This document shows, one piece after another, positions 23,469-40,498 of a DNA stretch of 64,000 nucleotides. A model generated the notes under the pieces. It saw nothing but the letters and a program-made list of their open reading frames with translations. It was not told where the DNA came from and did no database searches. Numbering within the stretch: position 1 is the stretch's first letter; each line of letters opens with the position of its first letter. The position numbers and the translations under genes were made by a program. Location of the stretch: NCBI GenBank assembly GCA_039096225.1, contig JBBPEB010000025.1, forward strand, positions 434,001 through 498,000. Reading direction: 5' to 3'. Source of the DNA: Blastocystis sp. Blastoise. Taxonomy: Eukaryota; Protista; Bigyra: Opalinata.

Positions 23469-23861
23469 CTAATGCTTTCTCGATTTATTAGATTGCTTCA
23501 CATAAAGACCCCAAGCATTATCTATTTAAATAAATAAATAAAATAATAAATTAAATAATAAAAATAATAAAATAAATAATGAAATAAAAATAATAAAATA
23601 ATAAATAAAATAAATAAAATAAATAAAATAAAAATAAATAAAATAAATAAAATAAAAATAAATAAAATAAAAATAAATAAAATAAAAATAATAAAAAAAA
23701 AGCTTACTCAAATAAAAGTTAACATCATCTGATGATACAACTTGATTTCCAGAACGTTTTGCTACAAGACATGCTCCATCAATTAGATTTTCAACAAAGT
23801 CTTGAGTTAATGAGGCCATAAAATATTGAACTTCAGAAGAAACATTAATTTCATAATTCAT
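23469..23861 (-). CDS. TAF12: TFIID subunit 12-like histone-fold protein
   Basis: EVQYFMASLTQDFVENLIDGACLVAKRS..DDVNFYL|NNAWG matches the TAF12 histone fold. One GT-AG intron. A possible extra 5' exon at ~23935-23956 is unresolved. Confidence 0.7.
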
Positions 23862-24269: not shown

Positions 24270-24343
24270 GCAAGAACCAGGGTGTGCCAAAACTGCGCTT
24301 TAAGCGCAAAGTGCGCTTTTCGATGTTGTTTTTGCGCTTAAAT
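24270..24343 (+). repeat. Left TSD, TIR and subterminal TTAAGCGC motifs of the hAT element
   Basis: GCAAGAAC|CAGGGTGTGCCAAAACTGCGCTTTAAGCGCAAAG...TTTTTGCGCTTAAAT. Confidence 0.88.
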
Positions 24344-25544
24344 CTTTTATTTCATTTTTCTTTTAATTTTTATAAATCTACATAGAATAAAACGTTTAAT
24401 AATTTTTAGAGGATCGAGATAAGCTCAATAATGATGTTTTTGACATTTTACACGAGGTTTGTGTTTGTTGATGTAATTTGATTTGTTGTTGAATAAATAA
24501 TAACCTTACACATATTATAATTAGAGAGCAAATTGAATTTTTTAGCATTTTTAGAATGTTAATCATGTAGTTATAATGATTGATTGTCTTTAAGTATTTA
24601 ACAATTAGGAAAAAAGCGTGATTATGTGTAGATCTTAATAATATAGTAGTAGTAGAATCATAATAGCAATACATGCTTCAAATTTTTACAAAACTTTGAA
24701 TTCTTTTAAATTGGCTAAATACTGATTATTAGTGGTCAAAAAATTTTCAAACTCAGCTCATCAAGACGCATTAATTTACACACTTTTCATGAAAAAAAGA
24801 CCGGGTGACATAAAAAAGTAATTCATTCCATTGACTATTATACTATGACATGACAGTTTTTAACTTAAAACATATTATTTTGATATATAATGTATAAATG
24901 TTTTGAAATAAGTCATCTAAGAAGATTTTTGTGACACATGTTGTGACAGATACATGACTTAAAAGTTCATAAGTCATCAAATAACAACAAGTATGATTCC
25001 TATATTTGACTATTTGTGTTAATTTGGGTGACAAATAAAAATTATTTTGTGACAAAAGTCAATTGCTTAAGATATTCTTTTGTATATTATTTTAAAGACT
25101 TTTATTTATGTTTATAATGAAAAATAATGTCAATAAATACTAAAAAATATTATAAAAAATAATAATGTAATTAAAAAGTTTTTATTTTTATAAAATATCA
25201 TGAAGTAGTCTTGTAGGGACTGTACAGATACATCCTGACAAGTAATAAAAATTAAATAAACGAAAAGCATATTAAAATATTATTTTTCAAAAATCAAACA
25301 AAAAACAATACAATGAACAAAAGCTGGATTTGAAAAAACAATACGTCCAACAAAATGATTTTTAATAGCCTTATAAAATGGTTTTAAAATGTATTTTATA
25401 TGTAGAATAAGTCACACAACACATTTATAATATTTATATTATAAAATATATTGTTTTTATGTTTAAAAATAAAAAAATAAAAAAACGGTTAGTAGTCACT
25501 AGCTTTGCAATTATTATATGACTTGATGAAAAATATTATAAGGG

Positions 25545-25616
25545 AGTTGTTTGGTCAAATGGTCAGTGCGTATAAAATTTTTACATAGTGGACGGATCGA
25601 ATCTTACGAGGAACTA
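25545..25616 (+). ncRNA. Degenerate tRNA-like Pol III unit inside the transposon
   Basis: A-box TGGTCAAATGG and B-box GGATCGAATC at tRNA spacing, partial acceptor pairing (AGTT/AACT), followed by an oligo-T run. Confidence 0.5.
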
Positions 25617-25908
25617 TTTTTTTAAACTTTTTCTTTTGACTGCTATTTACAATGATTTTATTTAAAATCAACTTTGTTTCATTTTTATTATCTGTAAACA
25701 TTATTTACATCATTGATATCTGCTTTTTAGTTTAGAATCAACATATCAACAAACTTTTTTTTTCAAAAAATAGTAATTATTGTTTAAAAACAATTCTAAG
25801 TATTTCTAGAATGTTATAAATGTAATAAAAGAGCATAAATATAATATTTGAAGATATCAAATAATTTTAAACTTATTATATAGAACACATGAAAAAATAA
25901 AATTGAGA

Positions 25909-25981
25909 AATCGGTTGGTATAGTTGACCAGCGCTGTAGCTATTATGGTAATTGTCGCTGGATCGAATCTCGCAAGAGGCA
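25909..25981 (+). ncRNA. Second degenerate tRNA-like Pol III unit inside the transposon
   Basis: A-box TGGTATAGTTG, B-box GGATCGAATC, partial T-stem GCTGG/CTCGC, followed by an oligo-T run. Confidence 0.5.
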
Positions 25982-26171
25982 TTTTTATTTTTATTTCTTG
26001 GAAAAACATCTTTTTATGAAACTTGTTCTTTTATATATTTATTTTGATTATCTCTTGATACGATCATTTATTTTGGTTTAATTTAATTAACTTAGTTTAT
26101 CAAGAGTATTCGCCTTGAGTATTTATTTTAATTTTTATAATCTGCTTTACTTAATTACTTTCTTTCTTTAG

Positions 26172-33267
<7,096 letters not shown>

Positions 33268-34199
33268 ATATGTTTGATGGCTTATATCAAATAAATGATA
33301 GCTTTATTTGCTCATTTATAAAGACATTTTTTTATTTAGGTTAACTTTGTCAAAAATATTATGATTTATGGCCATGTATACAAATAAGGTGAAAAGCCTT
33401 TCATTCAGTCTGATGACAAAACTCATGAGTATCATATTTTGTTACAAAAAACTTCCTTATGTGTTTGATAAATTCAGCAGAATTAAGCATGGCTGAAAAA
33501 GTGTCACAAAATTTGGTGGCAAGTGTCACCAAAGTCAGGAAAGGACTGACTATTTGATTATTTTTAAAACTTCAGTCATTCTTTAAAAATTTCAATGATA
33601 ATTTCATTCTTTTGTTAAAGATTCAAATCAGAATAAGATTATTGCCTATAATATTTTTTCAAACTTGCTTTCTATCTGCTTTCTGAACTAATAATGGTTT
33701 ATCATTAAGATTCATATTGGTTTTTGTTGCATTGTGAACTCCTCTTAAATACTAGTCAATATCTACTACATGATGATTTCCCATTGTTTGTTGATTGCTT
33801 TGTTACGTACTTGCTCGTTATGATCAGTGTTCAATACACATATCTTACAATGTGCTACGTGATGGATACTTATCAGTTACTTATTCTTGGAATGATTACT
33901 TGCAATGTATAATTTTATGAATATTTACAGTTTGTTGCCTTCCATTTATTATTTACATCTGATTTGGTTACTCACCAAACTTCCTTACTTCTCTTCTTGA
34001 ATTAGTATACTCATTTTTCTTTTTGTAACTTTGCGATTAATGAGATCTTTATTTATGTTGTTTGTATGTTTGATTTTATTCGACTAATGTGCTTTTGATT
34101 GCTTGTTCTACTTTATAAGTGCTAATTATTTTGTTTTTGTTTTTTATTTTTCTGATACTTCCTTTTTTCATACTGTATTATAATGGTATTTATATATAA

Positions 34200-36900
34200 C
34201 GATGACATTTTCTTATAGATTTACTTATTATGAATTTTCTTATTCTTATTCTAGTATTTAATAAATACTTAAACACTTCATCTCTGCGATTAATACTTAC
34301 TATGGTTACTAACATACATAAGTTTCTACTGAAGATAGTAGCAGATTAGTAACAATTGATGTTTATTTCTTTTCATCCTTAAATCCTTTTGTCTATATTA
34401 CAATATTATCATGTACTCTTATTCTATCAAGTTTACTATTATAAGTTTTTGAATGTTTTAGTATCTTATTGTGTAATTCTTTAATATGCTATTATACAGG
34501 AAAGTATCTATATGATATTTCTTTGTTGTAGTTTTCTGTATAAAATTTTTGAATTTCTTTTTATTCTTTGTATATATTTTCATCTTGGTTAATTATTCTT
34601 CAACTTCTCTTCATGTTATCGTTAGTCTACTATTATATATTGAATTTTTAGTTATAAACCTTATCTTATTTCCTTATCTTATTTCATCTTTTGTTCTTTT
34701 AAGGTATTATAGCATTACATTAATTGTATTAGTTTTCTGGTTTTTCAGTCTCTTCCTATCTTCTTCGTATGGTATCTTTATATTTATTAGACTCTTCATT
34801 TCTTCTGGTGCTTTTCAATTATTATGTGATCATTCGTAATACTTCACCTGCATGTTCTTTTCCCTTTATTAAAGAGTTTCTAGATGTGCTATTTTTATAT
34901 TACTTTTATATTATCCTTAGTTGATATTCCTTTTTCTCCTATGATAGAATTCTTTATGTTCTTATGTTATTCTAATAGTCGTTTCATATTTCTCTATTAA
35001 ACATACTATGAGATTTAATGACGATTTTCTTTTCCTTTAATAATTACAAATTCCTCACTATTATATATTATTATATATCTTAGTTTTATTATTCTAACAG
35101 ATTTATTTTTATATTTGTTTCTATAATTGAAAACATACTCAATTAATTTATTTTCATATTTCATTCAAATATACTCTTCATATACATATTCATATCCTTC
35201 ATTTATGGTTTTCTTCGTTTTCTCATGTTCTATATATTATCCCATGGTCTACTTATTTTTGTGCCTATTTTTAATCCTATACTTCCTCATTATCTCTATT
35301 TCTTTATCCACTTTTCTTTTATTTCTAGTGCTTCTATTGTGTATATTGTGTGCTCATTATTAGACTTATTCATTTTAATACTGCTTCATCATTATCTCTC
35401 TTCATATTCTTTAATGCTCATGTTTATTGTATTTCCTATTTACACAGTTATTATTTCAGAAGCATTTTCCATTTCTTGTCTAAATAATATGGGTTTGAAT
35501 ATTTTTATTAGTCCTATTTCTTACTATCGTTTTTTATAATTCTTCTCGTTCGTTTCCTTTCTTTTTCTTTCCAACAATTTCTCTCTTGGCACTACTCATC
35601 ATGGATTTTAGTAATCAAAGTTAGGATTTGTTCTCATTGTTGTATTACTATTATCTATATACCACAAAAGATATTTTTATTATTTCTCTTCATTCTAAGG
35701 TTTTGCTCTTTTTGTTACTTAAACATATTTATATGGCTACTCTTATTTATTATTATTGTGTACATTCTCTTCTTCTTATTTAATTTTTTATAAAAGCCTA
35801 GTATCTACACCTTCTATTCCTTCTATTCTTTCTCATTTCTAATTACTCTCATTTTCCAAAAATGATATAATTATATAATAGGATCTATGTCTCCATATTT
35901 CTTTCGTACTGTTATTTAATAAAATACTATCTCTATTTACTTTAAACCATTTCAACTCCCTTTAACTTATTATCTATATACATCTTACATTCATGCTGAT
36001 ATGAATACTATAATACTATTTGTATTTCTTCTATTTTGTTGAATACGGTTGAGGTAGTTCTCGAATTGTTTATTTTCTAAATTTATTTTCATTTCTATTA
36101 CTTTAGATATTATATCTTCTTAAGTGCATATGTACATAATTAATATGCTTATATATATTTACACCTGCTTTTTCCGTTATCAGCCGTTACTTCATATTAT
36201 TTATACAATGTCTAACTATTATATACAATTTACTCCGTTTGTTCTTTTACTCATGATGATATAATATAGAAATCAACTTCTTATTACTTCTTATGGTTTA
36301 TTTATTGTATTTCTATTTATAGATTTATATATATTTTTATACGAATATTGTTCTCTCTTCATGTTATTGTCTTTAAAAATATACTAAAAATAATTATTAT
36401 CGTCTCTTCTACTCATTTATCACTGCCGATTATAAATTCAGTTGATATATGCATTCTTCCTTCTTCTTAACTTCAAATTTTATTTACAAGTTTTTAGTTA
36501 TCTTCTTTATGATCTACATATATAAATATATTCTCATTAAGTCTATGTCAATCTTTCCAATAATTTTTCTTCTGATAATCTTTCAAATGCTAACCTTTAT
36601 ATAATATCATGAATCTTAATCTAATACTTATTTCATGCTATTATAATATAAAATCCACATTACTTTCTATTATATCATATATTCTAATACTCTTTCGGAT
36701 ATATATAATCCCTCATATGATACTTAATATAGATATAACACATCTTGCTCTTTCCTTTTGAATTCATGTATAAATATAAAATTGTTGGTGTAAACGATTT
36801 AAGATTCCACTTTATATATATGTTTTGGAAAATAGTATATTCTTTAGGAACCAATTGTTATCACTCTCTTTGTGATATTTGATTGATAAGTCAGGTAAAT
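34200..36900 (-). mobile_element. Highly decayed Ty3/gypsy-like pol relic (tentative)
   Basis: Purine-rich minus strand without microsatellite introns. Ordered broken motifs resemble CVDYRxL (~35800), FVVYIDDI (~35655), IGLI, IIKGKEN (~35030) and HAG (~34850). Confidence 0.3.
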
Positions 36901-37550
36901 GATTTTAGTAGTTATTTGGTTCTTTCTATTGATACATTATGATTGAAAATATATTTTGCTATTTATTTATATATTTAATCTTCTTGATTAGATATACTAT
37001 TTGATTTAAGAAGAGTATACTTTATAGTTGTATATTATACTTTTGATTGAATAAAGATTCTTATTAGTATTGGATATTGTTTTAAAGTATTATACTAGAG
37101 AGATTAGTATATATGAAATAATTACTTCTAAAATAATATTTATTTTTCATATAAGTAATAATATTTCTCAGTTATTCGTTTGATCTGAATATAATAGTAC
37201 TTGAAAAAGAATATAATTAGAAAAATAATTGAAATATAGATAAAAATTATTAAGGAATAGTGATTCTAATTAAGAAACTATATACTATTGATATAATCAA
37301 ATATATAAAGGAATATTCAATGTCATCTATTTATAATTATATTTAAAAGATAACAGTATATCTTCTTGAGTTAATTAAAACAATACAAATTATAATGTAA
37401 CAATAAAACATTATGGAATACAAATAGTTAATATAATGAAAACAATATAAATATATAAATATTAATAGTAAAAGAAATCAATGTACTTTGTAGTATAAAT
37501 ACAGTAATTAAGTAGTTGGATTAGATTAGTGATTTTGTTGCTAGATGTTA

Positions 37551-40287
37551 TCAATCGAGTTTCTTTTTCTTTAATTTATCTATATATAATTAAGAATAGA
37601 TTCTATATTATGTGAATTATGAATATAATACTTATAATATACATACGCTCTAAAACAGTAGTTATAAGTGATGAAGAATCAATGATATCAGAAGTTAATC
37701 CAATTGTCATTTGGGTTGTTGGATTAATAGTGTTTCTGTATTTGTTTTTTATATACACGAGATGACTGAAACCGCTCTCACAGAGATATGAAGTTGCAAA
37801 GGGAAGAAAACATTTCTTGGCTATATCATATAATAATGGAAAACGACTCTTATGGCTTATATAGAACTCATCTATTGGTACGTTATTAAATTCTTCTCTA
37901 CATGTTTTATCAGCAAGTAAACAGAAATACTCTTCTTTAACATGAAACTCCATTTTATTTTCGTCAGCTACTTTTGAAAATGGATTAGTAATCCAATATA
38001 AAGAATGATCAATAAGATTAGTTGTTGGTGTATTTTTTGGTTTTTTTATGTTACTATTCGTTTTCTTCTGCTTTTTATTCTTTTGTACTTCTCCTTGATT
38101 TGTATTATTACTTATTTCATTTGGAATGATTGCCCCAAGAGTTATTATACAATTGATATTAGCCTGAATTATATTTATATTACTAATGATTCCATTGTAT
38201 TGTCCTTGAATACTACTATTAGGGAAATTATTAAGAACACCAGAAATACTACCTAAAGTGTATCCATATACTAAATATGGAAAGTCAATTCTAATCGTTA
38301 CTTGAGTTTCTATTAATTGCTGAGTAACTATGTCAACATAGGTTATTAAGCCATTTACAACTCCATTTGGAGATACGCAACCTTGTAATGATCCAAGAAT
38401 ATTAAATTGGTTTGATACTACTGATGTATTGTTATTAACATTACTATTCACTTCATGAGATATATTTGATGTATTATGTGTATTTTCTTGGTCTATTAAA
38501 TATTCATTAAGGTCTTGAAGATACGATTCATCACTACCAATATAATTTAGTATTTCTGGGAAATAATTCAGTAAATTACGTCGAAGAGTTATTAGATGAT
38601 TTTTGATATAAAATATGATTGAATTAATATCAAGCTTGGTTGTAGATACATAATCCTTAAGTTTCGTAAATGATGAATAATCGTTATTATTTATTAGTCT
38701 TTCTAATCTCAACGATAATTTTATAAATAAATCCTTCATAATGTCTATTAACCCAAATATATATCTATGCTGTCCTTGCATTGATTTATTACAATCATAG
38801 AATAAACTGGTAACATCCTCAAGGTATAACATTGAAGCTATGAAGTTAGTATCAATAATGGTGTTATATAAGTCCTTCTTTTCTTTATCCTTTTTTATTA
38901 CTAGTGTTATTCCATTTCTAAGTAAATTAAATCTTTTAATTGATGAATGGCATGAAAGCCATCTTGTAGGGCAATAAAGGAGAAGTTTATAACTTCTAAT
39001 ATTTTTTTCCTTTTTTTCTTCCTTCTTATCATTACTATAAACTTCATGAATATTATTATCTATATTATTATCTGTATCAGATGTATCTAAAAGGGATTCA
39101 ACTACTTTATTATATTCTATCTCTAAAGAAGATATATTATTAGGGGAATCAGGTATGTTATCTTGAGGAGAGAAGATAGAAGAGGTTAATGAATATTCAT
39201 TATCAATATTGTAATTATTGGATTCGTCTTGTCTAACAGCAGACTTCTTTATATATGAAATTATCTCAACAGCACTTTTGAATATATTAGTGAAGTATTT
39301 TGGTAAACAGTTTACACAGAGTTCTTCTCTATGAAGAAAACAGTGGATGAACATACAATTCTTATTCTTCTCTAGTACTCGTGTTTTGAAGGAGTTTTTG
39401 TCTCCATTCATATTCGAAGCACCGTCAAAAGTAGCTGATACGCAATTATTCCACAGAAGGTTATTATTATTAAAGAAATTATCTACCATGTTAAATATAT
39501 TATCACCTGTTTTGGAACTAATCTGAAAAATACTTAAAAATGATTCAGTAAACTTTTTATTATATTCGTATCTAGCATAAACGAGTAAATAGGATTTCAT
39601 TTCTATGTCAGTTGACTCGTCAAGCTGAATAGAAAATGATCCTGATTGTCTTATCCTATTTATTACTTCTTGTTGAATTGTCAAAGCAATTTCATCACTT
39701 TTTCTTTTGATACTGCTTGAGGATAACGGAAGATTAGAAAGGACTTTGACATTCTTTAACCTTTCATATTCTTCAATAATAGGTTTAACTAATTTTTCTC
39801 CAGTTCTGTAGCTGTATCCATTCTTTGAAATGGAGTAGGCGATGAAATATGAAAGCTTACTGGATAAATCTGAAAAGCTAAAGAGAGAATTTGAGTATTC
39901 TGTGTTTTCATTATGATCTTTTAAGAGTTCTTGAATGTCATCATATGTATATTTGCTTAACCCATGTTTATTCTTGAAATGAGTGAAGAGTTTTGAGGCT
40001 TCATAACCTTTACACGTGAGAGTAGACTCACAGATTAAACAAAAATAGGAGTTTTTTGTTAATTTTTTAAATCCATAAACAACTGGATTGGCATTATATC
40101 TTTTAACTCCTTCTTTTACTTCACTATAATATTTGGATTTAGGATTAATATCTGGTTTATTATTCGTTTCTTCTGTAATTATGTCATCATCATCTTTTTT
40201 TTTTCGTCTGTTGTAGACTTGTCAATCTATATATATATATATATATTACTATTAATATACTTGTAATTTTTTAAAGTACTGTTCCAT
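37551..40287 (-). CDS. hAT transposase, Buster/ZBED5-like, with BED zinc finger
   Basis: Exon 1 MEQYFKKLQ (40261-40287), intron 40227-40260. BED finger CLIC..HFKNKH, LPLSSSSIKR, QLDESTD, FDGA, HCFLH, PTRW, WITNPF, ATSYLCESGFS, KNKYRN. One frameshift in an A10 run at ~40195-40204. The last short exon is tentative. Confidence 0.92.
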
Positions 40288-40432
40288 GTATTTAAACAAT
40301 AAAAAAAGTTTATCTAATATAGAATGTTCTTTTTGGTTTAGCAAAACATTTTCCCTTATATTTTTGTTTTTCCCGTGTTTTCATCACTTAAAATAACTAT
40401 GAAAATCACGGTAATAAAAAAGTAACTTTGTT

Positions 40433-40498
40433 ATTTAAGCGCAAAAATTTTGGTCCTTTCGCTTAACGAGTAACTACGTGGTGACCCCTGGCAAGAAC
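40433..40498 (-). repeat. Right subterminal motifs, TIR and TSD of the hAT element
   Basis: ATTTAAGCGCAAAAA...CGCTTAA...TGGTGACCCCTG|GCAAGAAC. Confidence 0.88.

Follow-up and report, generated by a model that had tools for sequence, protein, structure and literature searches.

Introduction

Transposons of the hAT superfamily are compact, measuring 2.5-5 kb, with terminal inverted repeats (TIRs) of 10-25 bp and target-site duplications (TSDs) of 8 bp (PMC3942097), and the efficiency of cut-and-paste transposition is thought to drop sharply above ~6 kb of cargo (PMC6431247). The closest described case of a much larger element is ToxhAT, a hAT-like element of ~14.3 kb that carries the gene ToxA in wheat-pathogenic fungi and is bounded by TIRs of 74 bp (PMC6737239). 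Here we describe a 16,213-bp hAT element at positions 24278-40490 of a 64-kb window, the whole stretch of DNA that was analysed, which corresponds to C18:434001-498000 in the 33.3-Mb, 34-contig genome of Blastocystis sp. 'Blastoise' (taxid 3128533, strain Rus-B; contigs are cited as C plus a number, and all other coordinates are window positions). We conclude with high confidence that this unit is one copy of a recently amplified 16.2-kb hAT, autonomous at the level of the family, and that ~80% of it is passenger DNA acquired before the burst.

The Blastocystis element shares with the canonical hATs (Ac, hobo, Hermes, Tol2 and TcBuster) the 8-bp TSD, short and imperfect TIRs that start with CAG, subterminal repeats, and a transposase architecture (putative BED, DDE, CxxH, W and dimerisation domain) that a profile match links to Hermes, but it measures 16.2 kb, with a derivative of 22.7 kb, where canonical members measure 2.5-5 kb, and ~17% of its length codes for the transposase. 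Like ToxhAT, it is a hAT-type element of at least three times the usual size that combines a transposase with unrelated genes and nested transposon material. Contrasting with its short TIRs, 16 perfect TSDs, 18 near-identical copies and pseudogene cargo, ToxhAT has 74-bp TIRs and no detectable TSDs, is single copy and carries an adaptive cargo, a virulence gene, and its movement was inferred from horizontal transfer and an inversion. Pack-MULE, Pack-CACTA and Pack-TIR elements likewise hold intron-containing host-gene fragments from multiple sources, amplified between transposon ends; these elements, however, are non-autonomous and mostly 1-2 kb long, with none above ~7 kb in the original survey (PMC6431247). 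A preliminary description of the locus had called it a Pack-type vehicle in a protist that retains its own transposase; the gene fragments and the protist host stand, whereas 'Pack-type' means non-autonomous and is therefore a loose label for a family that encodes its own enzyme. The Buster family (ZBED5/Buster1, TcBuster) shares the PF27073, PF27046 and PF14291 signature and the neighbourhood in the ESM-Atlas, and differs from the Blastocystis element in the TSDs of the latter, where position 2 is enriched in T and position 7 in A, as for Ac. The family is a hAT with passengers, made distinct by the repeated, unambiguous and recent transposition of a full 16-kb unit, by its miniature partner and by its host, a stramenopile gut protist. 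A term search of a review of giant transposons (PMC6431247) found no mention of hAT.

Strain Rus-B is an isolate from a Russian tortoise, and its genome was reported as diploid; the transposable-element content of tortoise-isolate Blastocystis genomes, 5.6-7.5%, was treated as unremarkable (PMC10690189), and a term search of that genome paper found no mention of a hAT or of a 16.2-kb element. The assembly was built from R9 Nanopore reads with Flye and racon in metagenome mode and then polished with short reads, and the annotation pipeline accepted introns only with RNA-seq support.

Results

The two ends of the unit have the organization expected of a hAT, and the three boundary features given in the preliminary description were all recovered. 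The 8-bp TSD GCAAGAAC occurs in identical copies at 24270-24277 on the left and 40491-40498 on the right. The CAGGG...CCA termini lie in inverted orientation as imperfect TIRs, CAGGGTGTGCCA on the left against CAGGGGTCACCA for the reverse complement of the right, with the first five bases perfect and 8 of 12 positions matching. Finally, the 15-bp sequence TTTTTGCGCTTAAAT at 24329-24343 has its perfect reverse complement at 40433-40447, each occurring once in the window. The left terminus (24278-24345, plus strand) thus comprises the TIR, subterminal GCGCTT/AAGCGC repeats that include a quasi-palindrome at 24295-24307, and the 15-bp repeat, and the right terminus (40433-40490, minus strand) comprises the 15-bp repeat, a CGCTTAA motif and a TIR that ends in TGGTGACCCCTG. 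Across the whole window, the CAGGG tips and the GCGCTT/AAGCGC subterminal motifs are confined to the two ends of this unit, so neither terminus pairs with another partner nearby. By analogy with Hermes, whose subterminal repeats serve as a model for such a role (10.1101/2022.09.16.508221), these repeats are probably binding sites of the putative BED domain of the transposase.

Searched with the first and last 300 bp of the unit, the genome yielded 18 copies of the left end and 19 of the right, all at 99-100% identity. Correctly oriented pairs lie 16,099-16,222 bp apart, except for two longer copies (18,385 and 22,709 bp), and one right end has no left counterpart. The resulting 18 full-length copies are spread over 11 contigs and sum to ~0.3 Mb, or ~0.9% of the genome. 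Perfect 8-bp TSDs flank 16 of the 18 pairs, and all 16 sequences are different. As for the other two, the copy at C31:218719-237103 has TCTGCTAG on both sides with three extra bases (TCT) before the left end, and the copy at C16:443718-459931 lies between the unrelated flanks GAACTGAG and CAATCCAC, which either an assembly error or recombination between two copies could explain. Identity among copies was sampled in pieces. Over the outer 1.79 kb of each end (3.6 kb in total) we count ~7 substitution sites across 18-19 copies, a pairwise divergence of ~0.03%, and seven interior samples (25900-27500, 27450-29950, 29950-31100, 31093-31710, 31700-33300, 33300-34500 and 34500-36500) are 99-100% identical in 16-18 copies. 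An exact search of JGI metagenome contigs with the left terminus gave no matches.

Could these copies be segmental duplications or an assembly artefact instead of products of transposition? Repeats can be misplaced in a long-read, metagenome-mode assembly of a diploid genome, and the two copies with unmatched flanks would fit such a history. Yet 16 copies have exactly the same end bases, each with an 8-bp duplication of its own, where mis-joins would have scrambled the TSDs and are therefore very unlikely, and an independent short-read contig, taken from a public run, reads through the right end into flanking DNA of the copy at C33:359030-375249. Matched and unique TSDs, identical end points and a spread over 11 contigs rule out segmental duplication, and we find the explanation as a whole hardly credible. 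The movement of the entire 16,213-bp unit as one, proposed in the preliminary description from the window alone, is thus borne out by 18 copies, 16 of them with matched unique TSDs.

Movement extends to enlarged forms. The 22.7-kb copy is flanked by the perfect TSD TTATTCAG and consists of the standard element with a 6.49-kb insertion at window position 36085. Two element copies in all have this ~6.49-kb insertion at that point, at C16:1151775-1158267 and at C22:60404-66893, the latter within a left-truncated copy on a different contig (C22:56001-67024). Because the insertion is common to two loci, the enlarged form must itself have been copied to another site. In the 18.4-kb copy ~2.1 kb of cargo is missing, and 4.1 kb has been added in the stretch from 36.5 to 37.6 kb.

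The same tips are found on a miniature inverted-repeat transposable element (MITE) of 332-333 bp, present at no fewer than 11 nearly identical loci (for example C14:629227-629559) with perfect 8-bp TSDs in 10 of the 11 copies. Its left 98 bp are shared with the giant element at 86% identity, and the right tip, which ends in GATGACCCCTG, is also common to both. The CAGGG tips are therefore functional ends, and a giant autonomous element with a same-tipped miniature is what one classically sees where a single transposase serves the two. The MITE also invites a different model, in which two small hATs or MITEs flanking 13 kb of host DNA were mobilised jointly as a composite or 'macro' transposon. 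In maize, paired Ac/Ds ends cause macrotransposition, which lends the model a precedent. Against it, the CAGGG tips and GCGCTT-type motifs occur nowhere inside the unit, which leaves it without inner ends; left and right form the two unlike ends of one element, as in the MITE; and an old relic described below keeps the transposase and a T/C-rich part of the interior together. A composite origin is accordingly very improbable, and we retain the reading of a single large element.

A separate observation concerns the abundant terminus CAGGGTTCGCCACGAAG, a 17-mer with ~30 exact repeats in the genome (for example at C1:321779, C4:1352371 and C21:610199), which probably marks a different family of CAGGG-type transposons or MITEs.

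The transposase gene (37551-40287, minus strand) makes up the right 2.7 kb of the element. Its open frame runs for 872 codons from 40221 to 37606, and the NCBI model of 876 amino acids has three exons: an 8-nt first exon that begins with the ATG at 40287-40285, a main exon at ~37632-40226 that follows a 53-nt intron, and a last exon set off by a 52-nt intron near the 3' end. The frame is 100% identical to the NCBI protein WA158_007455. At its C-terminus the hAT dimerisation domain (Pfam PF05699) reaches 22.0-22.3 bits, a small margin over the cut-off of 21.4; DUF4371 scores under its cut-off. A C..C...H....H pattern at residues ~60-90, whose sole Pfam match is a weak C2H2-type one (E 0.026), is a putative BED finger.

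A search among 5.8 billion proteins returned 13 remote relatives at no more than 32% identity. In their alignment D205/E206, D270, C298 and H301 are invariant and W425 and E819 nearly so, and these residues fall in the DESTD, FDGASNM, HCxxH and RWLS motifs and the C-terminal E region. We take them, from what is known of Hermes, to be the DDE triad with its CxxH and W motifs. Searched as a single sequence against the PDB, the transposase found no match, whereas a profile of the 14 homologues matched Hermes chains over 485-510 chain residues of the catalytic region (E 4e-19). The dimerisation domain, the conserved residues and the Hermes profile match thus point to hAT membership, which is well supported. 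The nearest outside relative that could be placed on a contig, P0003 (559 amino acids, 32% identity), is by comparison compact: its element spans 2,338 bp of an ENA metagenome contig with a G+C content of ~30% (ERZ26696514 ctg303231:9822-12159), and it has CAGAGGTTC tips and its own 8-bp TSD, TTGTAAAG.

The finer assignment is less uniform. In the preliminary description the transposase was called Buster-like, and the presence of a hAT transposase at the right with a Buster domain signature holds: its precomputed Pfam labels are PF14291, PF27073 (FAM200-ZBED5 RNase-like) and PF27046, and its nearest ESM-Atlas clusters, which are language-model neighbours, are FAM200C, GTF2IRD2-like and ZBED5-like. 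ZBED5 is Buster1, a Buster family member (PMC3606216). The target sites, on the other hand, depart from that family. The Buster target consensus is nnnTAnnn (PMC3517528, PMC3499496), and TA occupies positions 4-5 in two of 17 TSDs, whereas 12 of the 17 have a T at position 2, and as many have an A at position 7 (binomial p ~0.011 and ~0.005, respectively, against window composition). This nTnnnnAn pattern is the preference described for the Ac family (10.1101/2022.09.16.508221). The Buster label thus rests on the domain signature and the language-model neighbours, and the target sites look Ac-like.

The genome also holds a second hAT transposase lineage, 35-37% identical to the one described here, with intact frames of 632-773 amino acids at five places (C2:17054-19027, C23:490879-492852, C33:276907-278880, C23:217789-219505 and C28:33420-35005), three of which have identical search scores.

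An A-tract in the 5' coding region (40195-40204, minus strand) sets the reading frame of the transposase. It is A10 in the window copy, which also has one extra GAT, and varies from A10 to A13 among copies, with A11 in 12 of 19. With the annotated 53-nt intron only A12 is in frame. If the intron is instead a 34-nt GTATA...TATAG one, a type that abounds in the cargo gene, A11 is in frame and 11 copies are open (checked for frame only). R9 Nanopore reads miscount homopolymers, so the variation of the tract may be real or artefactual; the public short-read contig has the A11 form. Downstream, the C-terminal 565 amino acids are 100% identical in 17 copies, whose open frames span 787-888 codons; most copies of the family have a frame of 872-888 codons. 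The spliced NCBI model itself, coming from a pipeline that admitted introns on RNA-seq support alone, indirectly indicates transcription and splicing of the gene. Two further runs of the study that provided the short-read contig yielded no element sequence, which is no proof of absence.

These frames bear on whether the family is still autonomous. If every transposase were crippled, at the A-tract or at some other point, the copies would be frozen remnants of a past burst or would be moved by another hAT; the majority A11 form, which does not fit the frame set by the annotated start and intron, and the second lineage with intact frames at five places would both agree with this. The copies, however, are ~0.03% apart, which makes the burst extremely recent. 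Furthermore, 11 of them are open with the 34-nt intron, a type common in this genome, against two with the annotated model, and the A-tract lengths may be sequencing error. The other lineage, for its part, was not found beside these termini and is only 35-37% identical. Loss of autonomy is, in our judgement, unlikely, though the least improbable of the alternatives weighed here, and family-level autonomy remains our reading.

The passenger DNA amounts to ~13 kb, as the preliminary description had estimated, and comprises ~6.5 kb of gene fragments and ~7 kb of non-coding DNA. Between 26.6 and 33.1 kb the plus strand is gene-like, with many short exons and GTATAT...(TA)n...ATAG introns. Two parts of this region derive from the UTP20 gene. 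Cargo 26620-27468 aligns to C34:680433-679570 at 88% identity, and the first part (26620-27396, plus strand, with introns) includes an exon, 27196-27333, that matches UTP20 of other eukaryotes. Cargo 30260-33112, the second part (plus strand, UTP20_N, a pseudogene), aligns to C34:679432-676519 at 92-96% identity, with Pfam matches to UTP20_N in the open reading frames (ORFs) 31093-31710 (E 1.5e-23) and 31665-32417 (E 2.6e-7). In tblastn searches, UTP20 proteins from other eukaryotes gave colinear alignments to 27232-27330 and 31003-31889. In a genome-wide Pfam search the parent locus, C34:675944-678284, covers UTP20_N positions 3-363 in one 646-amino-acid frame and continues to position 538, whereas the element copies cover positions 3-121 in one frame, the cargo pieces being 241 and 251 amino acids long; the 241-amino-acid ORF had no match among NCBI gene models in the allowed length range. 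The homology ends at 33112 although the parent gene continues, and the cargo lacks both ends of UTP20.

Compared with the parental ORF, the cargo differs by 2.9% substitutions and by at least three indels that break the frame, among them single-base ones at 31694 and 32405 and one of 8 bp at 32574, and the broken frames are common to all copies. The cargo is thus a DNA-level copy, introns included, of an internal part of UTP20, and it has decayed since it was made. Shared frameshifts, and a divergence of 2.9% from the parent against ~0.03% among copies, place this decay before the latest jumps, the order of events that the preliminary description had proposed from the perfect TSD. Its host gene fragment is likewise real and can now be named as UTP20, but the cargo is fixed content of the whole family and not a private capture of this copy.

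Within the cargo, UTP20 is interrupted by a second multi-exon fragment (27397-30160, plus strand) with GTATAT...ATAG introns that is missing from the parent gene, where ~138 bp with a different short exon and then (AAT)n stand in its place. Its left junction lies in an intron and its right junction in a (TAA)n microsatellite (30160-30456), at the same place as the (AAT)n of the parent. The fragment matches no Pfam family, shows no similarity to UTP20 and has no separate source locus in the genome; the matches of one of its exons are element copies and older partial relatives only, and do not include C34. In our reading it is a second captured fragment, and its source has been lost or is too diverged to find. 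At least nine partial relatives of the chimeric cargo are present at 79-97% identity (for example C15:700469-706626, C28:236037-242637 and C16:188938-193461), so the chimera is much older than the burst, and more distant copies of UTP20 pieces (68-84%) lie near contig ends.

Could the cargo serve the element or its host, for instance as a truncated UTP20-like product or as a source of antisense or small RNA acting on the parental UTP20? One inner-fragment exon keeps 96-100% protein identity in relatives whose DNA identity is 79-93%, and the cargo and transposase genes converge, which would in principle allow antisense read-through. Set against this are the frame-breaking indels, which fall within what is a single ORF in the parent, and the absence of both UTP20 ends from the fragment; the exon identity, moreover, may simply reflect microsatellite-rich introns that cannot be aligned. 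A functional cargo therefore seems quite improbable to us, and we treat it as pseudogene DNA.

We also note that a motif at 32089-32136 recurs every 27 bp in tandem arrays elsewhere in the genome (C14:1307354-1307698, C21:10309-10518, C19:973202-973330, C3:1725118-1725219 and C18:270-344). Several of these arrays lie less than ~10 kb from a contig start, beside UTP20-fragment copies of 68-84% identity, and they are possibly subtelomeric repeats.

The rest of the interior is non-coding or repetitive. The left arm (24346-26016) is AT-rich and non-coding, with no Pfam match. It holds two units of ~75 nt (~25540-25615 and ~25905-25985), each with a B-box-like GGATCGAATCT and an oligo-T tail. The preliminary description had listed tRNA-like units in the cargo, but no credible tRNA came to light: ARAGORN found no tRNA gene in the window, Rfam none at the gathering score or at E<=1, and the 39 calls of a relaxed ARAGORN run in 16 kb are at noise level. 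The retroelement relic of the preliminary description fared no better, in that 30 internal ORFs gave no Pfam match at E<=0.1 to a reverse transcriptase, RNase H, integrase or gag-like domain. Dispersed repeats account for 26017-26683, with at least 12 other places at 69-73% identity, and for two short stretches within 33303-33553, with many other places at 73-88%.

Between the cargo and the transposase lies a T/C-rich, non-coding region (33600-37400, approximate bounds) with an AT skew of -0.34 and no Pfam match, which a genome search found only in the element copies and in one decayed locus. This relic, C15:593870-597974, has a stop-ridden transposase (593870-595245; 67-71% amino-acid identity) and the T/C region (596686-597974; 71-72%) in the same order and at the same spacing as in the element. 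The T/C region has thus long belonged to the lineage and is no recent capture.

A TAF12-like ORF (23529-23861, minus strand; Pfam TFIID_20kDa, E 2.4e-5, slightly under the cut-off) lies ~0.4 kb from the insertion site, so that the element sits in the upstream intergenic DNA of that gene.

Discussion

By combining the ends of one copy with a census of the whole family, our work points to a hAT that transposes as a 16.2-kb unit. We suggest that the transposase encoded at the right end, with its putative BED finger and DDE core, would bind the GCGCTT-type subterminal repeats and the CAGGG termini, and that the whole unit would then be excised and reinserted through an 8-bp staggered cut at sites of the preferred form nTnnnnAn, its copy number rising by repair of the donor site or through replication. 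Here we infer the DNA binding by the BED domain, the chemistry of excision and the mode of copy-number increase. The lineage acquired the UTP20 fragment, the second gene fragment and the non-coding arms before the burst, the T/C-rich arm being ancient. The 333-bp MITE is driven by the same termini, and the 22.7-kb derivative with its nested 6.5-kb insertion has also moved.

Several points weigh against this account. At the level of the copies, TSDs are unmatched in two (C31:218719 and C16:443718), identity between copies rests on sampled pieces, and small indels are unreliable in an 18-copy repeat assembled from R9 Nanopore reads with short-read polishing. Neither a transposition event nor an excision footprint nor an empty allele was seen. 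At the level of the enzyme, the transposase is frameshifted in two copies, and under the 53-nt intron only two of the 19 are open through the first 511 codons. The single public run that holds the sequence does not specify whether it is RNA or DNA, and its contig is unspliced, without splice joints. Finally, the window copy is open under neither intron model, and its first in-frame methionine lies past the first catalytic aspartate. The window copy therefore probably makes no transposase from the annotated start codon, with an assembly error as a possible cause, and as assembled it would need the enzyme of its sister copies in order to move.

A more far-reaching version, which we offer as speculation and hold to be doubtful, is that this is the largest naturally amplifying autonomous hAT, within a limited literature search, routinely moving 16-23 kb in vivo, and that an A11-A12 tract near the beginning of its coding sequence throttles its output, by slippage or by a choice between 34-nt and 53-nt introns that sets the frame, as a built-in switch with which a bulky element can burst and yet spare its compact-genome host. 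If this were true, the enzyme could be used as a high-capacity vector for a protist without genetic tools. Even at the level of what is seen here, the giant element and the 333-bp MITE form a pair with defined ends and an enzyme, and thus a candidate genetic tool.

A natural hAT has moved 16.2 kb at least 18 times and its 22.7-kb derivative at least once more, with almost no substitutions since. The family thereby offers a natural system in which to study the size limit of hAT transposition and the pickup and reshuffling of gene fragments, whose junctions here fall in an intron and a microsatellite, and it also bears on the contribution of transposons to the enlarged genomes of tortoise-associated Blastocystis.

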